NCBI GenBank assembly: GCA_965113315.1 | Contig: OZ220365.1 | DNA length: 64,000 bases | Reading direction: 5' to 3' (one strand) | From: Podarcis vaucheri | Taxonomy: Eukaryota | In this document: piece after piece, positions 2,536-51,357 of the stretch | Position numbering within the stretch: the first letter of the stretch is position 1 | Layout of the letters: every line of letters starts with the position of its first letter | Translations under genes and position numbers: made by a program | The notes under the pieces: generated by a model | The model's database searches: none | Told to the model about the DNA's origin: nothing | The model's input: only the letters and a program-made list of their open reading frames with translations

Positions 2536-3841
2536 CCTTCCCTCCAGAACTGCTGTAGGGAGGACATTTAAGTAGGCTGGGAGTACAGAAAGCTAGCTAG
2601 TTTGTTGGACAGGAATTCTCTGTCAATTAGAGTGTGGTTGGAGAATGTGGTTGGATGCATTGCTTGGGAGCATTGCTAAACAAGAGAAAATGCACCAGCA
2701 GAAATGAAGGCAAAAGAGGGCTCAATTTTGTATATAATTTGTATCCGCTAATTTATAGGCATAATTATAGATTTATAATTAGTATATTTTTGCATAGTCA
2801 TGCACCTCATGATTGTGACGAAGGCTATGTGTAGACATGCAGGGAATGAGGTCTACTTGCACAAGGCGACTTCCCCCCTCCTCTCCTTGTGTGTCCCCCC
2901 CCATCTAAACCTATGGGGGGTTTCCTTCAAACTTCTAGAGCAGATTTTGAGGGTGCGGGGGGAGGGAGGAAGTCTTTATTTCGTACATAACACAACTTAA
3001 CAGGGGTGCCAACTTGAATAAAATATTTAGCGGGGGGGGGGGGTAGGTAAGCCCCACCCCACATAATCAACCATGCATGGTGCACACACACCATTTGAAT
3101 GGCAATGCCAATTAACTTTGAGGGGACCGGCCCCATCAAATATTTTATTAGTGGGGCCAAAAGGTAGGACAGATAGTCACCCTATTTTGAATGCTCAAAG
3201 CAGTGACTAAACATATGCCTACTCACCCTTTGATGGTACCAACATCAAGGGATGACTTGTATGATGTATGCCACAACAATCCAATACAGACAGACAGAGC
3301 TTTCATATTTCTTCACACCACCCCAAACACGAGATCTTTCAATACAGGGAATAAATTCCTCAGAGCTGTGAATCTTCCAGTGGCATTATCAAAGAACTTT
3401 AATATTGCCTTACATCACCAAAACACCTCACACGCACCTGAGATCTTTCAATAGAGGTAATGCTAGAGTTCAGCTGTCAGTCACCATGCGATGCTAACAA
3501 GTGGATGCCCAGAAGTCAAATGACAGTTATAGAAAATAAATTGAACAAAACAGCAAACTAAGCAAACTAAGTGTATATTTCCTATACGAAAAGGAAAAAG
3601 TCACAAAGAGAGTGGGATAAAGTTAGTCTTGGATGCTAAATGGCCTATGGTCCCACTTTAATATTTCAGAACCACAAATGACAGGGCAATAAGTCTACCC
3701 AAAGCAACTTCTGTGAGCTTGGCGGAGCACCAAGGATCCTCCTATCTTGCTACATACAGAATAAAAGGTACCCATTTCCATCAAATCTATTGCACTGCTG
3801 CAATCCCTTAAGGACTTGGCCGTGCTGCATTAATCTCTTTG

Positions 3842-4257
3842 TTAATGTTGTTGTTTAGTCGTGTCCGACTCTTCATGACCCCATGGACCAGAGCACGCCA
3901 GGCACTCCTGTCTTCCACTGCCTCCTGCAGTTTGGTCAAACTCATGCTGGTAGCTTCGCGAACACTGTCCAACCATCTCATCCTCTGTCTCCTTCTCCTT
4001 GTGCCCTCCATCTTTCCCAACATCAGGGTCTTTTCCAGGGAGTCTTCTCTTCTCATGAGGTGGCCAAAGTATTGGCGCCTCAGCTTCACGATCTGTCCTT
4101 CCAGTGAGCACTCAGGGTTGATTTCCTTCAGAATGGATAGGTTTGGTCTTCTTGGAGTCCATGGGATTCTCAAGAGTCTCCTCCAGCACCATAATTCAAA
4201 AACATCAATTCTTCGGCAATCAGCCTTCTTTATGGTCCAGCTCTCACTTTCATACAT
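3842..4257 (-). mobile_element. Bov-B (RTE clade) LINE, 5'-truncated 3' fragment
   Basis: ORF 3808..4257 YESESWTIKKADCRRIDVFELWCWRRLLRIPWT...LEKTLMLGKMEG...WRALVHGVMKSRTRLN is the Bov-B RT C-terminus; (CAA)n-like tail. Confidence 0.93.
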
Positions 4258-4785
4258 TCTTTGTTAATACCAATGTCCAAACTTTAGTCCACCCCCTAGA
4301 CATGTTTTCACTACAGTAACTAAGTGGATCAGCCCACTGCCTTCCTCAGGGCTGGCACGTCCCATTTCGCCACTTGGGGTCAAATGGGACATGCCACCCC
4401 ATTCTGCCACCCCACCCAACCTGCTGCTGGCATTGCCTGCTGAGCCACTTCTGCCACTGGCAGAAAGCAGTGCATACATTGGTGCCAATTTCCGTCAACA
4501 TCTCGTCAGAAATTGGTGCCAATGCCAGCGCCATTTCTCTGCCAGCATAGCTTCTGAACCTGCACTGTTTCTTTGCCAATTCCACTTGTCTGCCAGTGAT
4601 GGAGACAGCAGGGCAATTGGAGTACCCATGGGTCTTCTGCCACCTGAGGAAGCTGCTTCACACCACCTAATGAGTGCGCCGGCCCTGGCCTCCCTTCTGG
4701 GTTACACCTTGATGTATGTTCCACCTGCCAGCCTAGAACTTCATGGGGAGGGTAACATAATCATTTTTCTTTCCTCGTACTATTA

Positions 4786-5205
4786 GAATCATAGAATCAT
4801 AGAATCATAGAATCATAGAATCATAGAGTTGGAAGAGACCACAAGGGCCATCGAGTCCAACCCCCTGCCAAGCAGGAAACACCATCAGAGCACTCCTGAC
4901 ATATGGTTGTCAAGCCTCTGCTTAAAGACCTCCAAAGGAGGAGACTCCACCACACTCCTTGGCAGCAAATTCCACTGTCGAACAGCTCTTACTGTCAGGA
5001 AGTTCTTCCTAATGTTTAGGTGGAATCTTCTTTCTTGTAGTTTGGATCCATTGCTCCGTGTCCGCTTCTCTGGAGCAGCAGAAAACAACCTTTCTCCCTC
5101 CTCTATGTGACATCCTTTTATATATTTGAACATGGCTATCATATCACCCCTTAACCTCCTCTTCTCCAGGCTAAACATGCCCAGCTCCCTTAGCCGTTCC
5201 TCATA
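4786..5205 (-). mobile_element. CR1 LINE 3' end with (ATTCTATG)n tail
   Basis: [22 protein letters not shown]...[20 protein letters not shown]; (AGAATCAT)x5 at 4786-4825. Confidence 0.95.
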
Positions 5206-7904: not shown

Positions 7905-8420
7905 AAATAAATAAATAAACCTTTATTGTCACTACACCACCTGTGTGCAGTGAAATTAAACGACCCCCCCCCATACACTCAATCTTGTTCACACTCTGTG
8001 TGCTTGTCGGAAGTCAATTGCACCAATATTTTTGTTTTCATTTAGCAACCCAACAGCCCACAGATAAAGCCTGTTCTTTAACCTGTTGGTGCGGCTGACT
8101 ATACTTCTATATCTCCTGCCTGACGGTAGGAGATTAAAGAGGTGCTGGCCGGGGTGTGAGTCGTCCCTAAGAATTTTCCTCGCTCTCCTGAGGCAGTCAT
8201 CTAGCGAACTCAGGGGACAGCCCATGATATCATGTTCTGCATTCACCACCCTCTGTAGGGACTTCCTGCCCGTGGCTGTCAAACCAGCGTACCACACTGT
8301 AATACAGTATGAAAGGACACTTTCTGTTGTGGACCGGTAGAAGGAGATCATCCATTTTTGTTTGACATTGTTCTTTTGCAAGACCCTGAGGAAATGGAGT
8401 CTCTGCCGGGCCTTCCTATT
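7905..8420 (-). mobile_element. Rex1/Babar-type LINE 3' fragment
   Basis: KARQRLHFLRVL...FYRSTTESVLSYCITVWY...LRDDSHPGQHLFNLLPSGRRYRSI...RTNRLKN; (TTTA)n tail. Confidence 0.85.
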
Positions 8421-9077
8421 GTGCATAATTCCCAAGAAAAGGAAGATATGCATTTTAAAATAAAAGCTTTACAACATACATTTTTTTACCATCACGAGAA
8501 AATTATAATAGCAGAAAGGATGCAGGAATACTCCAGCAGAAGCAATGCTCTTTATTTTAAACACACAGATCAATTTAGGTTGTTTTTTAACCAGCCTTAC
8601 CTTCCAATTGAATTGACTGTTGTAATTAGATTGTTTTGGTTTTCATTACAACTTTGTGCTCTGATTAGAGAGCCGCGAAGTTGTAGAGACTGTGCTTACA
8701 CTTTTACTGGGCTTCCCATGGTTTTCTACTCAGAAGTAAGCCCCACTGAGTTCAGCGGGACTTACTCCCAGGTAGCTGTGTATAGGATTGCAGCCTGAAT
8801 CAAAAAGAAAAAGCTTTGGAAAGCAAATCTTTACAAGCTGTGAAGCTGTTGGAGGGCGCAGAGCTCTATTCTTAAGTACCTTTGTGATGGACTAGAGAAC
8901 CAGTTGCAGCCCTAAGGGCTGTATAAGAATACATCGTGTGAGCATTGGATTTCATATGTGACTAGAGACTTTTCAAAGGACGGTAAGAGAAGAGATAACA
9001 AGGAGCAGGAACAAGGTCACTGGTGTCATTCATCCATGTTTGCTTCAAGCTTCAAGTGACAGATCATTCTCTTCTAG

Positions 9078-9544: not shown

Positions 9545-10260
9545 TAGAATCATTGAATTGTAGAGTTGGGAGGGATCCTGAGGGTCATCTAGTCCAACCC
9601 CCTGCAATGCTGGAATCACAACTAAAGCATCCATGGTAGATGGCTGCCCAACCTCTGCTTCAAAACCTCCAAGGAAGAAAAGCCTACCACCTCTCGTGGG
9701 AGTCTGTCCCAGTCTCAAACAGGTCTTACTATCAGAAAGTGATTCCTGATGTTTAGTTGGAATCTCCTCTCTTGTAACTTGAAGCCATTGGTTCAGGTCC
9801 TAGCCTCTGGAGCAGGGGAAAACAAGCTTGCTCCATCCTCCATGTGACAGCCCTTTAGATATTTGAAGATGGCTATCATATCTCCTCTCAGTCTCCTCTT
9901 TTCCAGGCTAAACATACCCAGTTCCCTCAACCATTCCTCATAAGGCTTGGTTTCCAGACCATTGATCATCTTAGTTGCCTTCCTCTGCACACCTTCCAGT
10001 TTGTCCCATATTCTTCTTAAACTGTGGTGCTTAGAACTGCATACAGTACTCCAGGTGGGGTCTGACCAAGGCAGGACTATGACATTCCTTGACCAGGACA
10101 CTAGACTTCTCTTGATGCAGTCTTTTTATTTTTTTCTGTTGCTGCTGTTGATTCAAGTTAGGCTGGTGGTCTGCTATGACCCCTAGATCCTTTCAACATG
10201 TACTACTGGCAAGCCAGGTGTCCCTCATCTTATACTGGTGCAGCTGGTCATTCCTGGTTA
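9545..10260 (-). mobile_element. CR1 LINE 3' fragment (older, diverged)
   Basis: [51 protein letters not shown]; degenerate AGAATCAT tail. Confidence 0.92.
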
Positions 10261-30325: not shown

Positions 30326-30534
30326 NNNNNNNNNNNNNNNNNNNNNNNNNNNNNNNNNNNNNNNNNNNNNNNNNNNNNNNNNNNNNNNNNNNNNNNNNNN
30401 NNNNNNNNNNNNNNNNNNNNNNNNNNNNNNNNNNNNNNNNNNNNNNNNNNNNNNNNNNNNNNNNNNNNNNNNNNNNNNNNNNNNNNNNNNNNNNNNNNNN
30501 NNNNNNNNNNNNNNNNNNNNNNNNNNNNNNNNNN
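30326..30534. other. Assembly gap (209 N)
   Basis: Run of N. Confidence 1.
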
Positions 30535-41774: not shown

Positions 41775-43966
41775 TGAAGTCACCTATTACTACAGCATTT
41801 TCTCTTTTGGATGCCTCCTTGATTTCACTCTGTACCTCAGGAACACACTGGCCAGGGGGGTGTAACATGCCCCCAGTACTAAGTTACGTTTCTGGGTAGC
41901 ATCCCCTACAGTTGTTCTGTGGACTAACACAATACTGTGGAGAACACTTAGTGAGACATTTCAAGGCTGGCCAACCAGGTGGTACGGTGGCAGAGTTAGG
42001 TATTAGGTAAACAGAGCAAACATCCCACCTTGATGCTAACCAAACCAGCCGAAATTCTGTAAATTCACTTATAAATGCCGCTCTGCTCTAACAAGTCTTG
42101 TCAATACTTAGAAACTTGCTTAACAAATGTAATTCCTGAAGAAGAAAATCTGAATGTGTGTGTGTGTGGCAAAAAAAAAAAAAAATTACGGGCAGGCAGC
42201 TCACTTTAAACTTACTAAATACAGCTTGCAGCTTATTCTAAATGATTTACAACTTTCCTCCCCAACCTTCTTACGACCCCCTTGCTGAAATTATTTCCAT
42301 GGTTTCTGAGACAAAGGACAAAGAGAGGAATATTTCAGAATTTTATAATATTTTGCATTAAAATATACAAAACTTTTGTATGTTCCCTGCCAACAATCTG
42401 GCTGCAGTTCTTTGAACCTGTGGCCCTCCAGATATTGTTGGATTACAACACCCACCAACCCCAGCTAGCATGATTAGTGATCAGGGATGATGGGTATTGC
42501 AGTGCAAAAACTTACGAAAAGCAACAGTTTCCCTATTCCATGTGCAGAAAAAGTAGTGAAGTCAGAGAGAAATGAAATACAGAAGTGCTAAGTATTGTAA
42601 TTATGTTAAAACTTAAAATTCATGTCAATTCGACAGATAGAACACTGACATGTTTTAATCTGCTTCTTAGCTTATCGTTGGTTTGATTTTTTAATAATTT
42701 TAGCTAATAATTTTATTTATTCTTTTTGTAAACCACTTTGAGGTTTTTTTATGATCAAGGAGTATATAAATCTTGCAAAATAAAATTAATTCCAATGACA
42801 GTTCCCAGAGCAGTGTTGATTTTACTATATCAGCTAATATAAAATATATATTTAAAGCATTTATGTTAAAATGTTTAGTATAGGGATAAAATTCACATAC
42901 TGTATATGCACAGGCATGTATACATAGATTAACATATATATTTTTAGAAAACTAATAATGAAGGAGTTCATAGTATACAATTAATAAGCCACAAAGTCCT
43001 AAAAGGTCTTTAATAACACCCTTTGTTATGAACGTTCACTCAGAATAAAATATTCTATTCCATTAAAAAAAAAATCTATTCCCGCCTGTGTTAAATTCTA
43101 AATGGAGCTAGAAATAAATAATGGATTTGGTCTGATGGCAGTGACTACAAAATGCAGTGCATTGCTAATGTTTTATTAATACTGATATTTGCAGGAGCTC
43201 TGCACTCATTCTTGAACTTACATAATAATTGTTTATACCACAATTCAGGGTTGTGTTTTAAAGTTATAGGTTTTTCAGCCTAGGGCAAGCTGTATAAAAT
43301 GTTTCAGTTGGGCAATAGAACAAATTTTGTTTGAGGAAACTCCTTTGGTACCTATGTTACTACCAGTACGACATAGCACTGATATATCACATTACAGTAG
43401 TTTGTTAGTCGCTGGGCAAAACACAAAAGTCATGCGATCTCTGATCCGGGGACCTATTTATTTTAAAATATGTGCATGCCTTTCAAAAACACACAAACAC
43501 ACACCCCTACCTGCAATAGAAAACATAAACAGTGGTAAGGTTGCAATCCTATAGCATCTGGGAGGATGCCCTGTGGACCACAAGATACATCAGTTCATCC
43601 TCCTTGCTGCCACAGAAACACCCATAGCACTGGCTCCGACCAACGTTGGAGCTAAAAAAAGGGGACTATTTGAAGATGGTTAAGGATGTGTCAAGGGAGA
43701 ACTGGGAAGGGGCTTGAATCCAAAGGTCCAGAGCATTTTCAGCGACCTGACATGCCTGCAAATTTCCCTTCTGTTATTTCCAACTTTACTTCCCTGGGGC
43801 TGGTCAATTAAGGTAAATAGGACACTGCCTCACTGTCCCCCTGCCGCCTGTCAAATTTGCCCTCTATATGAGGGAAGATAAAGGTTCCCTAGCCGTGATT
43901 TATATTAAATCCAAGTTGTTTTAGAATTTGTCAGAAGTTGATGTTGAAATACAGCATATCCTTATA

Positions 43967-44538
43967 TAGTGGTACCTTGGGTTAAGTACTTAATTCATTC
44001 TGGAGGTCCGTTCTTAATCTGAAACTGTTCTTAACCTGAAGCACCACTTTAGCTAATGGGGCCTCCCACTGCCACCACGCCACTGGAGCACAATTTCTGT
44101 TCTCATCCTGAAGCAAAGTTCTTAACCCCAGGTACAGTGGTGCCTCGCAAGACGGAAAACTCGCTAGACGAAAGAGTTTTCCGTTTTGGAGGTGCTTCAC
44201 AAAACAAATTTCCTATGGGCTTGCTTCGCAAGACGACAATGTCTTGCGAGTTCCTGCTGGTTTTATTCCTCCCCCCCCCTTTTTCTAAGCCGCTAAGCCG
44301 CTTATCAGCTGATCCGATCAGCAGATAAGCCACTAAAAGCCGCTAATAGCGCTAGTAGTGCTAATCCGCTAATCCATCAATGGGCTTGCTTCGCAAGACG
44401 AAAAAACCGCTAGACGAAGAGAATCACAGAACGGATTCTTTTCGTCTTGCGAGACACCACTGTACTATTTCTGGGTTAGCGGAGGCTGTAACCTGAAACA
44501 TAAGTAACCTGAAGCGTATGTAACCCGAGGTACCACTG
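43967..44538. mobile_element. Tigger-like MITE hosting a nested MITE
   Basis: TIRs (t)agtggtacc...ggtaccactg; interrupted at 44135-44462. Confidence 0.9.
44135..44462. mobile_element. Tc1/mariner MITE (CAGTGGTGCCTCGCAAGACG family), nested
   Basis: TA TSD on both sides; homologous to 29294-29636. Confidence 0.92.
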
Positions 44539-44845
44539 TACAAGCTTTCATTCTTTTTAACAATTAAGTTTTGCATTAATCCTTTTATAAAATCTTAGAT
44601 ATCTCCTATTTGAGAGGGCACCATAAATAACGTGCCCTCGTCTTGAAACTGATGCCTTCCCCCACCTTCAACAGTTCATCTAAATCAACTGGCTGAATAT
44701 TCTCTGGAAAATATCCATTTTAACTATTTTTCTCTCAGCCTCCCTCGGAGTAATCAGTGGATAAAGGAACATTTCTGTTAATTCAGGTGGTACAACAATA
44801 TTTTTGGAGATAGCCAAGCAAGATTATTTGAAAGACAACAAAAAC

Positions 44846-44918
44846 CTTCCCTCTTGCTATTTTCTGTTTCTTCTCTTGCTCTTGCTCTCTTTTTCTTCTT
44901 TGCAGGAAATGGTGTGAT
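44846..44918 (-). other. Candidate exon ITPFPAKKKKRARAREETENSKRE (may extend to 44666 with frameshifts)
   Basis: tgttttttaaag acceptor; in phase 0 with donor AAG|gtaact at 45268; NLS-like basic run. Confidence 0.35.
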
Positions 44919-45409
44919 CTTTAAAAAACAGCGAGGCAAAGTTAGAGAATTATTTATTCTGTGTGCAGCTGTATTATAGTCTCATTAAGATACACATTTT
45001 TATAGAACGTGCAGTGATGGAAAACAAAACAAAATAATAAAACACAACAGGGCATGTTATAGTGGCTCATTACGTCGACCGTGGGTAGGTGAAAACATGA
45101 AGTCTTGGTGCATTAGATGTGTTTAATCTTTCACCAATGGTTACCTGTTGTGTTTTGATGCAATTTCTTGATTCCCTGTATGGTTTTTTTTCCTAATTAA
45201 CTAGGTGCTATCAAATATATCTGTACCAGAGGAGAACTTCATAGTCTCATATTGTAGCTCCAGTTACCTTTTCAGCCCTCCTTCTAGACCAGTGTTTCCC
45301 AACCGGTGTTCCGCGGCACACTAGTGTGCCGCGAGATGTTGCCTGGTGTGCCGCGAGATGTTGCCTGGAGGGAGGCGGGCGAGTCCAAAAAAGGTTGGGA
45401 AACACTGCT

Positions 45410-46200
45410 CTAACACACGCCAGCCGGGGTCTGCCTCCGCGTTGCATCAGCTTCCTCGCTCTCGGCACTCTGCTTGCCAGCCTGGTGGCCTCTGCCCCGC
45501 CCCAAGACTGGAAGGGAGGGGCGGGGCTTCCACTGCGGCTGCGTCTCTGGCTCTTTCAACTCATTCCTCCTCTGAGTGGGCTTGAAAGAGCGGCCGATGG
45601 ATGAATCGGCCGGCGACCCTGAAGCCTTGTGCAAAGTAGAGGAGGCGGAGAAGCGACGGCAGGGAGCTTAGGCGCCGCATCCGGCTCATTGCGGGAAGTC
45701 AAGATGGCGGCGGGTAAGTGTGGGAAGCAGCTTTTCCCCTCCGCCGCCCCCCTCTCACCGGGAATAAAGGGGCCCCCGCTGGGGGGTGACGTTGTAGAAC
45801 GCAGAGTTCTTATTTTGGGAAGGTTTGAGGGGTCGGACTAAGCGGGTTGGGGGGCTGGTCTGGGCTTCCGCTCCCTCCCCTCCCCACGGAGTGTACCTGC
45901 GGTGCAAGGAGGCGCTCTGAGCCACTGCTCTGGGAAAGGAAGGAGGGCGAGGCGGCCTGGCCAAGTACAGGGGAGACCCGTAGTGGGGAGCAGGGGGAGG
46001 AGGAGGCACCGAGGAATGGAGGCGGGGGAGACTCCCTCGCTTTGCAGAAACTGCAAAAAACGAGGCAGGAATTGGGTTTGTTTTTGTAGCTCAGGACGTG
46101 CTTCGCTTCTGGTGTGCCTAAGGCGGCCGCCCCAATTATCCCCTAGCCCGTCTTTCCAGGTGCTGCCCCCCCTCCACAAAGGGCCATAGAACTGTAGAGT
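45410..46200 (+). promoter_or_regulatory. CpG-island housekeeping-type promoter
   Basis: High GC and CpG density; GC boxes near 45495-45503 and 45518-45526; GGAAGT (ETS) at 45694-45699; AAGATGGCGGC (YY1) at 45701-45711. Confidence 0.8.
45704..45713 (+). CDS. First coding exon (M-A-A-x) of an unidentified gene
   Basis: Strong Kozak context aagATGG followed by G|gtaagt donor at 45714. Confidence 0.65.
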
Positions 46201-46228
46201 TGGCAGGGGTCCCAAGGGTCATCTAGTC
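46186..46228 (-). mobile_element. Tiny CR1 3'-end fragment inside the composite element
   Basis: catagaactgtagagttgg...aagggtcatctagtc matches the CR1 tails at 4820-4860 and 9556-9595. Confidence 0.65.
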
Positions 46229-46887
46229 TTAAGTTTCTCTTTCAAAAAGGAAACGTGGGTTAAAGCGGCGACGCCGCCCCCAACTCACTTTCCTGCTCTG
46301 GCTTCCCTAACAGTTTTCCGAGTTGCGTCACTGGATCCAGCCCCCTTTTCCACAGGTGACACGGGGCTGGAGGGAGGGAAAGAGGGCTTTACGTCGCACA
46401 CAAAGGCAGCTTCCTAGAAGCGCTCTGGGCCGGCGCTGTTTCGCCGAAGGACCCCCACCCTCAGCTCCTTCAGAAAGGACTGGAGCGGAATAGCCCTTTC
46501 TCTTCTTCCCCAACCCTTGTTGTTGGAGGAGTCCCTCAGTCCCTCGCTTTGCTGCCTCCTCCCCCCCCCCAAAGCTTGGAGGTTCCCCGGCAAGGGGGAG
46601 GGGAAAAAATTGAAACTTACACTTTCGTGCGTCCCTCCCGGCGTGACGCTGCGCGCTGACGTCACGGGGCTGTAATGGTGGTGTGCCTCGAGATTTTTTT
46701 CATCAAACAAGTGTGCCTTTGCCCAAAAAAGGTTGGGAAACACTGTTCTAGACATTAGTTAATTAATCTGTTTGGTACACATCTTGCATGCCCTTCACCC
46801 TAGGGTCTCAAGTTGTGGTATAGTTGGTCAAAAAAAAAAAAAAGGTAAAATAACTGAAGTTCAATTGGAAAGTAAACAAAATAATTG

Positions 46888-47223
46888 GACGTGTGTGGCA
46901 CTGTGGGTTAAACCACAGAGCCTATGACTTGCCGATCAGAAGGTTGGCAGTTCGAATCCCCACGACGGGGTGAGCTCCCGTTGCTCGGTCCCTGCTCCTG
47001 CCAACCTAGCAGTTCAAAAGCACGTCAAAGTGCAAGTAGATAAATAGGTACCGCTCCGGCGGGAAGGTAAACGGCGTTTCTGTGCGCTGCTCTGGTTCGC
47101 CAGAAGCGGCTTAGTCATGCTGGCCACATGACCCACTGGCTCACTCGGCCAATAAAGCGAGATGAGCGCTGCAACCCCAGAGTCGGTCATGACTGGTCCT
47201 AATGGTCAGGGGTCCCTTTACCT
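46888..47223 (+). mobile_element. Sauria SINE
   Basis: Head, core and ACCTTT tail; TSD TAAACAAAATAA(T/C)TG. Confidence 0.92.
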
Positions 47224-47539
47224 TAAACAAAATAACTGAACAATAGCTGTTTCTGTAACAACACCTAAGTTCCATTTCTCTGCAGGAGGCAGGAACAACC
47301 AGATCTAACACAATCCATTCTACCCAATGCCCTGGGCAAAGAGGTATTTCTTGACCTGCCAATGGAAAATGTGCAGTAGTGCCAGACACCTCTGGAAGGA
47401 GGAAGTTCCACAGTTTTCTTCTGAATGTAATGTGGGCCAACCCAAAGGATTCTACCAAGTTTTCTCACAACCATTGAGCCAAATGCAATCACACCCTTGG
47501 GGGAGATTAATGTGAGTTGTCAACTGCCACGTGTTAGGG

Positions 47540-47675
47540 TAGGCATGGCCAAACTTGGCCCTCCAGTTGTTTTGGGACTACAACTCCCATCATCCCTAAC
47601 TAACAGGACCGGTGGTCAGGGATAATGGGAATTGTAGTCCCAAAACATATGGAGGGCCAAGTTTGGCCATGAATG
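47540..47675. mobile_element. Palindromic hAT MITE (same family as 19656-19792)
   Basis: TSD TGTTAGGG at 47532-47539 and 47676-47683. Confidence 0.9.
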
Positions 47676-48036
47676 TGTTAGGGCTAAGGCATCAGTATAT
47701 GACCTAAAATGAAAGGAGGACTGCCAAAGCATCTTTAGTTGGCAATGTTTTGGTCCCTGAATCTTCCTGAATCACTACTATGTTAGTGGTTGAACATTTT
47801 CTCAGCTCCCCAATCCAGCCATTTACCAGTCCTTAATAGAGGGGAGTTAGAAAAGAGCCTGCTCTCCTGAAGTGATGGTCCATAGAGAGAGAGAGAGATG
47901 TTTTCTAAGGCCAGAACAACATGTGCTTGTCATCAAAAATAGCCCTGTGATTTGTCCTCTTCCATCTTCAATATTCATTCATTCAAGGGCAGGTTACAAG
48001 AACAAGATATACCGTTATAATTAGTAATTTGTATTA

Positions 48037-48270
48037 CAGTGGTACCTCGGGTTTCATACACTTCAGGTTATATACGCTTCAGGTTACAGACTCCGCTAAC
48101 CCAGAAATAGTACCTCGGGTTAAGAACTTTGCTTCAGGATGAGAACAGAAGTTGCGCGGCGGCAGCAGTGGGAGGCCCCATTAGCTAAAGTGGTGCTTCA
48201 GGTTAAGAACAGTTTCAGGTTAAGAACGGACCTCCAGAACAAATTAAGTATGTAACCAGAGGTACCACTG
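48037..48270. mobile_element. Tigger-like MITE
   Basis: TA|CAGTGGTACCTC...GAGGTACCACTG|TA. Confidence 0.92.
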
Positions 48271-48939
48271 TATTTAGTAATACAAAATGTCCCAATCCAG
48301 CTCATCTTTTGCCAGCGGGACAGAATAGGGATCATGAGCACTCTTGCACTCCTTCATCTTTTCCCCAGTTTTAATTTTTAATTTTAAATATTTTGAACTA
48401 TTGGAAACAACAGAAGAGAAATAACTGGGATTAAGCTACACCAGCTCCGCATCTGGTGTAGTTCAAACCCACATGGAAGGTGAGGATCCATCCTTTGGAC
48501 TGAAGTCTTCCCTTTGGTCTGCTGTTGCATGTCAGCAACACTTCCCCACCCCCAACATGGTCCTACAGAGGTCTGCTTGCCGGTAAGACCAGGAATATAG
48601 AAGTTGCTGCTGCAGCAGCAGTGAGGGGTTATCCAACATTGACCTACCTAAGTTCAGAACCCTCAGAGAGGGAGATCCAATGTGTCTTATGGCCCCCAGA
48701 AAGTCCTGTCATTACCACTTTGAATCCAGAGGCACATTTCACTTACCTATTCTAAGCAGCAGCAGCAGCAGAAAAGGGAGAAGCAGTCTGGACCAAGGAA
48801 GAGAATGAGTAGTGCACTTTTAACATCTATTTATTGCTTTCTCTGCCTGTGGTTTTCAAGCAGGGCCACTAGACTAGTAAGTAGGGCAGCCCAAGGAGAC
48901 ACTGCCTCGCCATTTCTGAAAGCACAGTAGCAGCTGCCA

Positions 48940-49320
48940 GGGCCAAATTCAAGGTACTAGTGCTAATATATAAAGTCATAAACCATATTAGAGCATCTGC
49001 TTGGCAGATGAGGCACAGGGCCTTTGCCATAGTGGTTCCCCATGTGTGGAGTGCCGTCTCTAGTGAGATGTGTCTGTCTCCCTCATTATTGACTTCTGGG
49101 AGAAATTTAAAAGCATTCTAGCTTAATCCAGACATTTGATGGTTGAAAGACACTTTTCCTGGGATTACCAGTTGAGATAATCATTTTAACTGTTTTTTAG
49201 AATGCTTTATAAAATGTTTTAAAATAATGTTTTCTTCGTTTTATGAGTGCTGTGCCTGCCCCCCTGGGCTTCTTTGGGGATGTGGGAACTGGAAAGCTGG
49301 GATATAAAGTAAATGAAGGA
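48940..49320 (+). mobile_element. Degenerate L2 3' end
   Basis: aaattcaaggtactagtgctaatatataaag...ggcctttgccatagtggttccc motif. Confidence 0.55.
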
Positions 49321-51357
49321 ATGAATCAGACTCGAAGCAAAGCATGACAGAGATATATGTGCGTATGTGCGTTTATTTGGTTTTTTGCAGTCCATTTCAA
49401 ATATGAGCTTTTTGATTACGGGTTCGTGATGTGTCTGATATGATTTAACTGTAAAAGTACCTCCGCAATATGACTTCAGGGATTTGAGAGACAGCGCAGT
49501 ACAAGCAAACCTGTTTGTCAAAGCAAAAATGCTTGACTTATTAAACAAGATGATTACAGAAGAGTCAAACTGTGACAGGCCTTGTTAGACGGAGCAGATG
49601 GTCTATTTGTCAGCATGAGGGAGAATGGTGCTTGCAACATAAACTCCACACAGCTTCCACCCTGCCTTGCCTTGACACTTGGCAGTAATTTGTTACCAAG
49701 ACCAATGGTAAGGAGAGAAAAATGCACACGATTCACCTTGTCTCCGAATCCATTATTTTAAAACTCATTAAATCTGAAAATATGTGGGGTTTACTGTTGG
49801 AATTGCTGACAACAGAACACTGTATGCCTCACAGTATGTTAATTGCTTTGTTCTCCTTTTCCTCATTGTTGCTGATGAATTCACTGATATCTGGTAATTA
49901 TCGATGCTATAATAATAAGCTTTTCCCCAGTGGATGGATAAAAGCAAAAATTAAAAAAAATTAAAAATGCTTTATATCAAAAAGACCACAAGAGGAAATT
50001 TCATTTCTTTGTTTTCTTGCAACTACATAGGAGTAGGTGAAGAGCTGTTAAGTTATTCCTGGGTGTTTGCGGAGTTATGTGGTGATTAGAATATTGTCTG
50101 ACAACTGGGGGAAAGTCTGTGAGTCCAAAATTATGAGTCAGATTTAGCTGCTGTAGCACAAACTAGTAATTTGTACTGCAGAAACAAAAGTCTCAGAATA
50201 TACCACGAACGGTGTGGAGATAACCTGTTACCACAGTTGAGCCAAAACGTCTCAATTTTTGAACAAATATTTAAAATCTTTTTTAAAAAGAGTTTATCCT
50301 GAACTATTGGAGAATTTCTGTCCTCCTCTAGAGAATACCTTGGTAGCAGCCATCTTCAACACCTCATACAGTGCAATGGCAGTTCTTCCCAGTACATTCT
50401 AGAGGCATTTGCAGCCTCACTTTTCAATGTACAGAAGCAACTGCAATTGTTAGCTGATGGGGGAAAAAATTAAAATAAATGGCAGGCCTTAGAGTATCTC
50501 ATAAAAGTGAATGATTCCCATCTTATTTGTTTTGGTTTTTTCAGGGGAACATTTCTTCTTCTTCTTCTTCTTCTTTTAGCAGCACAGAGAATAGGACAAG
50601 CTTAAATATGCAGAGTGTGATAGCAGCTTTGAATCAGAATTATACTGTGCCTTAGTTCATCCCTAACCTGGACAGTGAGACAGCTTCATATGTTCAACAA
50701 AATCAGAGCTTGGTATTTATCTATTATCAGATTCGGGTGGAAGTTATTTTTTGGAAAATTTACTGGATGGATCTCCAAAACCCTCAGCACAAAGCATACA
50801 AGAGGCTTGGGCTCTGGAATCTTGCCTGGAACCTCTATATCTTTTGCTGGAATTATTTATCCCCAGATAATAGGCAGGCTATTTGGATTTTGAGGAGTGA
50901 TTAATGCTTTCGGATTAGGCAGCTTCGTTTTTTTCTCTCTCCCCGTCCCCGAAGCACATCTTATTAAAACCAAAAGATTTACGGCGGACACGAGTGACTG
51001 CTCTGAGCCAAAGACCACAGGTGAAAAACAAAATTGTCTCTCTTCGTACTGGCATCCAGCGCCTGTTGAAGAGATGGAGCAGAAAGCAGTAAATGATTGG
51101 CACCACTGTGGAGACATGTCCTGAGAGCGATGGGAACTCAGTGTTCTTACCAGTGGGCATTTGGAAAGGAGCGAAGGAATGTTCCGAATGGGGACATGAG
51201 CCCAGGACATCATCCACTTATACTGGCCATGGCTGGACATTCACTTGCACCCTTGCTATGGAAACTGACTCTGTTTCCCCTGTCTTGGCCACTTCCAATG
51301 GGCATCTGTTGAGGAGGGTCCTCACTTTCCTTTCTCAGTCATATAGGAACCAGGCCT

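Follow-up and report, generated by a model that had tools for sequence, protein, structure and literature searches.

In a 64,000-nucleotide stretch of DNA from the lizard Podarcis vaucheri (NCBI GenBank assembly GCA_965113315.1, contig OZ220365.1; the whole stretch is called the window below, and all positions refer to it), the segment 45290-46745 is a composite hAT transposon with foreign, promoter-like DNA inside. From left to right it comprises a complete miniature inverted-repeat transposable element (MITE), a newly captured layer (cargo A), an older filler layer (B1) and a right arm (Table 1). On the explanation that we regard as probable overall, it is a non-autonomous element of young age that has three ends and Charlie/SPIN-like CAGTG termini and inserted as one 1,456-bp unit, and its cargo is passive baggage, the copy in the window being silent in the RNA data examined and losing CpGs. 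The element is probably of the Pack-TIR type, a known kind, and is made unusual by its third end, its stacking of layers, its 10-20 copies and a probable polymorphism for presence or absence. An earlier reading of the same DNA (hereafter the sequence-only reading) had proposed a mobilised promoter and first-exon cassette copied from another locus; the composite nature of the element and its foreign promoter-like DNA have stood, while the donor gene has not been found.

Architecture of the element and its target sites

On inspection, the 1,456-bp unit is bounded outside both ends by 8-bp direct repeats, TTCTAGAC, an octamer that an octamer count finds just twice on the plus strand of the window, at 45282 and 46746. 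The sequence-only reading had described this shared flanking 8-mer together with a left terminal inverted repeat (TIR) at 45290, a right TIR at 46731-46745 and a third, internal right end with 23-bp identity to the outer one, a non-matching flank (CTCTAACA) and no second left TIR, and each of these was found where it had been placed. The left TIR starts with CAGTG, in agreement with the hAT pattern YARNG, and has perfect inverted copies (15/15) at an internal position, 45393-45407, and at the outer end, 46731-46745. Over a longer span, the internal right end (45385-45407) and the outer one (46723-46745) are identical at 23 of 23 bases, and CTCTAACA lies directly 3' of the former. Within the window, neither a second left TIR (at three or fewer mismatches) nor a further copy of the element family was found.

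The inner MITE is a foldback structure (-31.1 kcal/mol, z = -5.2, folded as single-stranded DNA) and contains a 22-nt tandem duplication (45321-45364, 95% identical); in contigs, many other family copies are without 3 nt at 45359, inside the region of this duplication. Its subterminal GGCACAC/GTGTGCC motifs reappear in the outer right arm, and contig depth over the element ends is about 10^4 times single-copy.

The target-site duplication (TSD) TTCTAGAC agrees with the NTCTAGAN consensus of related lizard hATs, and the TCTAGA core occurs 13 times in the window. The sequence-only reading had cautioned that such a preference allows matching TSDs to arise by chance more often than for random octamers; the caution is justified, as the NTCTAGAN target of related lizard hATs (Novick et al. 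2010, PMC3014272) puts the chance that two independent insertions share an octamer at about 1 in 16 at best.

Copy number and layering

Contigs or reads of four public runs were aligned to window positions 43800-49700. X1 and X14 are whole-genome-sized runs from two related organisms, and X23 is a raw RNA-seq run. The remaining run, X15, is labelled 'RNA?'; an RNA origin was rejected and the run treated as low-coverage DNA, since its cargo and flank depths (16.3 as against about 1-3) stand in the ratio found for the DNA runs. Copy estimates are per-contig depth ratios within each run, summed contig depth not being a formal copy number.

Single-copy flanks have depths of about 8-10 in X14, 92-126 in X1 and about 1-3 in X15, as against cargo depths of 151 in X14 (one unbranched 753-nt contig, 45413-46166), 948 and 943 in X1 (45428-45818) and 16.3 in X15. 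The cargo-to-flank ratio is consequently about 10 in X1 and about 15-19 in X14, and the version with cargo A is present in roughly 10-20 near-identical copies in the genome. The sequence-only reading had held that a single-copy island would speak against its proposal; at these depths the cargo is not single-copy. Flank contigs of X1 have no differences from the window in 763 nt, whereas the X1 cargo contigs depart from it at 6 of 392 positions, which are also those that differ in X14, so that the cargo contigs must have been built from other copies. Between the window copy and the family contig there are seven differences (about 0.9%), four of which are CpG decay (CG to CA or TG, at 45467, 45504, 45558 and 45573, where the window copy has A, A, A and T, respectively). 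Furthermore, one X15 contig with the depth of the cargo extends over 45685-46262 and crosses the cargo/B1 junction, which shows that the composite, rather than the cargo by itself, is repeated.

A second, more abundant form lacks cargo A altogether. Contigs of X1, X14 and X15 connect the right TIR end straight to 46228-46233, omitting 45408 to about 46230, and in X14 the contig over this arms-only junction has a depth of 1023 against 1002 for the B1 contig (46233-46479). The equality of the two depths identifies a family of about 100 copies composed of end, B1 and right arm without cargo A; the form with cargo A is a minority of younger age. B1 differs from the window copy by six substitutions and a 9-nt indel in 247 nt, the corresponding figure for cargo A being 0.9%. 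Depth climbs again from 46531 (an X15 contig at 46531-46656 reaches 390, as against 42.7 for B1), and in one X14 contig the match is confined to the part from 46531 on, the preceding GCC-rich sequence being different, from which it follows that the 215-bp right arm is common to other cargo types. The sequence-only reading had missed both that what lies to the right of about 46229 belongs to an older layer of higher copy number, and not to the same capture, and that the cargo is bounded by octamers resembling hAT targets. Additionally, X1 contigs contain a deletion derivative of the cargo in which 45457 is joined to 45789 with one extra T (depth 401, about four copies); the deletion, 331 bp long, takes out the GC boxes, the ATG and the donor.

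These data bear directly on the alternative of a native CpG-island promoter lying between two independent hAT insertions, a whole MITE to the left and a fragmentary element to the right, with flanks that match by chance through the NTCTAGAN preference. Given that preference, the two free positions would match by chance about once in 16, and the observed/expected (o/e) CpG ratio of 0.62 is island-like. Against this, the cargo occurs in about 10-20 copies across three runs and those copies differ from the window copy at shared sites, the right-hand part with its TIR-end junction is a repeat of about 100 copies, the switch in GC content coincides exactly with the element ends, at the TSD the flank contigs of two runs pass into single-copy DNA, and no transcription is seen over the cargo in X23. 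It is the depth and flank-contig evidence, and not the TSD, that decides between a composite and two insertions, and a native island is effectively excluded.

Nature of the captured DNA

The CpG island, GC boxes, ETS and YY1 motifs, ATG, GTAAGT donor, CR1 scrap and AT-rich surroundings listed by the sequence-only reading were all recovered. The interior of the element (45408-46660) has a GC content of 0.61 and a CpG o/e of 0.62, against 0.30 in the whole window, and exceeds the usual island thresholds (GC of at least 0.55, o/e of at least 0.6, length over 500 bp) at 0.61, 0.62 and 1,253 bp. The 200-bp intervals adjoining the element have 36-37% GC, and the shift in composition falls exactly at its ends.

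Within cargo A, Sp1 boxes some 190 bp upstream are followed by an ETS-like site, a YY1-type box over the ATG at 45704, which is in good context, three codons and a consensus donor. This order of Sp1, ETS, YY1-ATG and GTAAGT is typical of housekeeping promoters and first exons. Cargo A looks like a housekeeping CpG-island promoter with a three-codon exon 1, a donor and about 500 bp of intron running into a CR1 element, and a promoter with first exon would be the best reading of its origin, as judged from motif grammar. Other CR1 copies in the window go on as ...catctagtcCAACCCCC, and the cargo copy ends as ...catctagtc; because its right edge thus cuts a CR1 3' tail, cargo A is an arbitrarily cut piece of ordinary genomic DNA. 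The comparison copy comes from one of several CR1/L2-type remnants with pieces of open reading frames (ORFs) in the window (3808-5178, 7989-8453 and 9551-10101).

The donor gene of cargo A was not found in the window, in the homologue search or among the contigs of the public runs. The 125-amino-acid cargo ORF had no match in a protein homology search, a Pfam scan of ten ORFs from cargo and arms returned nothing over the cut-off, and the exact 30-mer spanning ATG and donor has no match in metagenome contigs. The multi-copy state of the cargo, the failure to find a donor gene, protein homologue or domain, the lack in X23 of RNA reads at 88% identity or more from a putative parent exon 1 and the remark of Du et al. 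(2011, PMC3260210) that filler present in many copies may conceal where it came from would suit a reading without gene capture, in which the cargo is the interior of a repeat family (a hAT subfamily or another repeat promoter) that resembles a promoter and exon. We consider it improbable: the cargo ends in a truncated CR1 tail and has target-like octamers at its edges, it is absent from the arms-only form of about 100 copies, and its motif order is the grammar of a cellular promoter and first exon.

Route of capture

Both edges of cargo A look like hAT target octamers (Table 1), which would favour capture by two elements acting together or by a local hop of the inner MITE. The commonest of the arms-only junctions reported for X1 consists of the right end followed by A and CTTAAGTTTC (A and CTTAAGT...), and ACTTAAGT fits the NYYTARRN target of related families. 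Relative to this form, the cargo/B1 junction, ATCTAGT(C)/(A)CTTAAGT, is 1-2 nt short of simple abutment. Such loss of nucleotides is typical of hAT excision footprints. A P-nucleotide origin of the TT at 46229-46230 was also considered and dropped, the commonest X1 arms-only junction already having CTTAAG.

A plausible sequence of events would begin with a three-ended element (MITE, B1 and arm) located at the TCTAG of a CR1 within the first intron of the donor gene. In the simplest course, the inner MITE may then have hopped about 0.8 kb upstream, to the 5' side of the promoter, leaving a footprint; otherwise, a separate MITE may already have been there. Transposase would next have used the left end of that MITE together with the old right end and moved everything between them. 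The route would amount to alternative-ends or macrotransposon transposition, and the missing second left end could plausibly be explained by excision of the inner MITE. Two limits apply to a macrotransposon assignment: the target-like edges, as putative relics, were read after the sequence had been seen, and a second left end is absent.

The same composite could have arisen differently, with the cargo pasted in by repair synthesis after excision (abortive gap repair, synthesis-dependent strand annealing or a FoSTeST template switch) and the MITE foldback as the stall point. A mechanism of the repair type is favoured for animal Pack-TIRs and for the filler DNA of Ds elements (Tan et al. 2021, PMC8277862; Du et al. 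2011, PMC3260210), the strong hairpin formed by the 118-bp MITE could explain junctions at its edge, the sequence where B1 meets the arm (46530/46531) does not resemble a target, and the C at 46228, shared by the CR1 consensus and the start of B1, provides a microhomology of 1 nt. Repair synthesis accounts for filler DNA in general and perhaps for the B1/arm boundary. However, it leaves unexplained why a complete internal right end should have a target-like octamer after it, and why the right edge of the cargo should be ATCTAGTC, with five of six core matches against a background of 0.4%, and it does not predict that the point of return should be the older end/B1 junction of the family of about 100 copies. 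We therefore regard it as rather unlikely, the two-element route being about twice as likely in a judgement made after the sequence had been seen.

Apparent absence of the insertion in related genomes

Left-flank contigs from X1 (846 nt, depth 92) and X14 (1030 nt, depth 8.5) cease to align exactly at 45281 and carry 83 and 267 further letters, respectively. Position 45281 is the base preceding the TSD, and the stop fits an empty site at which eight letters are ambiguous for the aligner. Had the element been there, extension of a 31-mer contig would have been limited to about 38 nt, and the added letters would have aligned; moreover, TIR and MITE words at depths of 10^5-10^6 would have raised the mean of a flank contig well over single-copy. 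As the mean depth of the tails is single-copy, they represent single-copy sequence and not transposon ends. The 83-nt tail would match 46746-46828, finishing at an A-run. The insertion appears to be absent from this site in both X1 and X14, which we infer strongly, and the apparent absence suggests that the 1,456-bp unit moved recently enough to be missing in other individuals or sister taxa.

The restored empty site was also considered as a first exon on the minus strand (45258-45289 plus 46754-46760; ATG TCT AGA AGG AGG GCT GAA AAG/GTAACT), a candidate that was set aside, its flanks being AT-rich and having zero reads in X23.

Expression and functional status

The RNA evidence consists of the single raw run X23, of unspecified tissue, from which 12.8 million reads, about 12% of the run, were sampled. 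Across 45573-46163 there are zero reads on either strand, and none fall in the unique flanks; repeats near the element are well covered in the same run. Neither were reads from sibling or parent copies observed over the cargo at an identity of 88% or more. The sequence-only reading had seen in the element a portable promoter plus splice donor and had suggested RNA-seq as a check on use of the donor at 45713. X23 contains no reads there and no loose ends at 45713, and the window copy has lost CpGs; the idea is unsupported, though tissue-specific use may escape a single run. The window copy shows no sign of function. The share of CpG decay among its private substitutions, four of seven, suggests germline methylation.

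A functional alternative, in which the carried promoter and donor would serve here as a new alternative first exon spliced into host exons, is for these reasons highly improbable. The motif grammar is intact with a consensus donor, the CpG o/e still stands at 0.62, and chimeric transcription is on record for some animal Pack-TIRs (Tan et al. 2021, PMC8277862); against these points stand the zero reads on either strand and the lack of loose ends at the donor in X23, the germline methylation suggested by CpG decay in the window copy, and the existence in X1 of about four copies whose 331-bp deletion removes GC boxes, ATG and donor, with no sign of constraint.

Several points weigh against the explanation that we prefer, a young three-ended composite with passive cargo that moved as one unit and acquired its cargo through two elements. 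The empty site is deduced from tail length, depth and the exact stop at 45281, and is not a direct reading. A divergence of about 0.9% from the family contig is greater than expected for a polymorphic insertion, unless the source copy already differed. Furthermore, the boundary between B1 and the right arm does not resemble a target, so that this layer may have another origin. The X14 cargo contig begins at 45413 and not at the MITE junction, the copies differing just left of 45413, and the status of the other copies comes from depth ratios. Finally, expression was assessed in a single run, from about 12% of its reads.

Features of the element and neighbouring sequence

Table 1. Positions of the parts and motifs of the composite hAT element in the window.
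Feature	Position	Strand	Description
Left target-site duplication TTCTAGAC	45282-45289		8/8 match to right copy
Left TIR CAGTGTTTCCCAACC	45290-45304	+	15 nt; sequence inspection
Complete inner MITE	45290-45407	+	118 bp; TIRs 45290-45304 and 45393-45407; GGCACAC/GTGTGCC subterminal motifs
Putative relic MITE target duplication CTCTAACA	45408-45415		4/6 TCTAGA-core matches; 3.8% of window octamers as good or better
Cargo A, newest captured layer	45408-46228	+	about 820 bp; CpG island, 10-nt coding start, GT donor, intron-like stretch, CR1 scrap
Two GC (Sp1-type) boxes, 45495 and 45518	45495-45526	+	motif search
Motif stretch ending with the donor: ETS-like GGGAAGT (45693) and YY1-type AAGATGGCGGC (45701)	45693-45719	+	motif search
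ATG 45704-45706 in YY1-type box; exon end 45713; donor GTAAGT 45714-45719	45704-45719	+	motif search
CR1 3'-tail fragment	46185-46228	-	86% identical to 9551-9594; cut at cargo/arm junction
Right edge of cargo A ATCTAGTC	46221-46228		5/6 core matches; 0.4% of window octamers as good or better; putative relic target site of the second element
Layer B1, older filler	46229-46530	+	about 300 bp; from three-ended subfamily of about 100 copies
Right arm core	46531-46745	+	215 bp; cAMP-response-element-like (CRE-like) TGACGTCA at 46657; GTGTGCC at 46681 and 46711; outer TIR 46731-46745
Right target-site duplication TTCTAGAC	46746-46753		8/8 match to left copy

In the vicinity of the element, repeats resembling short interspersed nuclear elements (SINEs), which we take to be of the Sauria-SINE type, lie at 43968-44540, 46895-47224, 47541-47740 and 47937-48272; their contig depth is enormous, RNA-seq reads cover both of their strands heavily, and they dominate the pile-ups. 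Elsewhere in the window, a run of 209 N (an assembly gap or masked sequence) occupies 30326-30534, and an Rfam scan of the whole window gave no match.

Relation to known elements

Pack-MULEs of rice are TIR elements that carry GC-rich 5' gene fragments, are multi-copy and are often transcribed; they belong to the Mutator superfamily, with 9-bp TSDs and long TIRs, and are different from hATs. In the lizard element, the non-TE content expected of a Pack-TIR is provided by 45408-46228, which is absent from the arms-only form of about 100 copies and has no transposable-element (TE) domains. Among animals, 370 Pack-TIRs are recorded in 100 genomes, mostly hAT and with four multi-copy cases, and the multi-copy ones tend to contain GC-rich DNA (Tan et al. 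2021, PMC8277862). Closest in kind is Pack-hAT-N8_XT of the western clawed frog, a multi-copy element carrying the 5' untranslated region (5'UTR) of CAPSL (Tan et al. 2021, PMC8277862): in both cases a non-autonomous hAT has non-transposon, GC-rich DNA resembling the 5' end of a gene between its ends, and like the frog element the lizard one has probably reached its several copies by transposition. The lizard element differs in its copy number (about 10-20 as against 3-5), its three ends, its complete inner MITE and its filler layers, of which at least two are stacked. Moreover, template switching (FoSTeST) was favoured by Tan et al., whereas the edges of the lizard cargo point to two-element transposition.

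A precedent in plants is provided by the maize Ds2 and Ds-l4 elements, with filler DNA that is sometimes genic, and by macrotransposons (Du et al. 2011, PMC3260210). Maize elements and lizard element alike have hAT ends around unrelated filler, form clusters with shared filler and often have an untraceable donor; the lizard case is set apart from Ds-l4 by its vertebrate host, by a cargo that starts exactly at a complete internal end and by its apparent polymorphism, and hence recent mobility, most Ds-l4 elements not responding to Ac. In Ac/Ds macrotransposons of maize, the outer ends of two nearby elements are used, the host DNA between them is moved and internal ends are kept (cited in PMC3260210). 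The maize cases are laboratory alleles, usually four-ended and not amplified, while the lizard product has no second left end and became a small family; its putative membership in this class derives from junction sequences only.

With respect to its termini, CAGTGGTTCCCAACCT, and its NTCTAGAN/NYYTARRN targets, the element matches Charlie/SPIN-like lizard hATs (Novick et al. 2010, PMC3014272). The lizard families hAT-N3_AC, hAT-HT3N_AC and SPIN_NA have termini CAGTG(G/T)TTCCCAACC and 8-bp TSDs of the form NTCTAGAN/NYYTARRN, and Anolis-type MITEs of the hAT-N3, HT3 and SPIN groups are 135-800 bp long with 10^2-10^4 copies (PMC3014272). The present element differs from these by one TIR base (T for G at position 6), and those families have not been described with host promoter cargo.

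Related ends were also encountered in DNA that is not vertebrate-like. The exact 23-nt right end is present in 50 metagenome contigs (L001-L050) of the Joint Genome Institute (JGI) from a eukaryote without CpG depletion (GC 0.40, CpG o/e 0.84), where it closes MITEs of 176-511 bp whose 8-bp flanks match at 7-8 of 8 positions (e.g. L013:312-822 and L021:8432-8643). These loci share only the terminal 23-40 nt with the lizard element; they support the 8-bp TSD and are silent on the cargo. The shared end could be an old conserved hAT end or could reflect horizontal transfer, as for SPIN. In viral contigs the left-end 32-mer has no match, and an autonomous hAT with matching ends was found neither in the window nor in the fetched metagenome loci.

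Implications

That cut-and-paste transposons capture pieces of host genes and spread them is well established for plants; animal cases are rare, and multi-copy ones very rare, at 4 of 370 (PMC8277862). On a practical level, a dispersed and recurring sequence that resembles a CpG island may confuse the annotation of promoters and genes in squamates.

A broader and tentative possibility, which we hold to be distinctly less likely than its opposite, is that capture is active and self-extending in the lizard lineage, three-ended hAT composites growing by hops of the inner MITE and by the pairing of a new left end with the old right end. If so, each hop would pack host DNA behind the internal end, the newest layer being innermost, and landing of hATs in open 5' regions would make the cargo mostly CpG-island promoters and first exons; the outcome would be a genome-wide, still polymorphic, multi-copy vertebrate Pack-hAT family whose mechanism could be read from its junctions. 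As a young and apparently polymorphic hAT of about 10-20 copies, the element offers a natural system for the study of capture by DNA transposons in vertebrates, in which junctions can separate the competing models.

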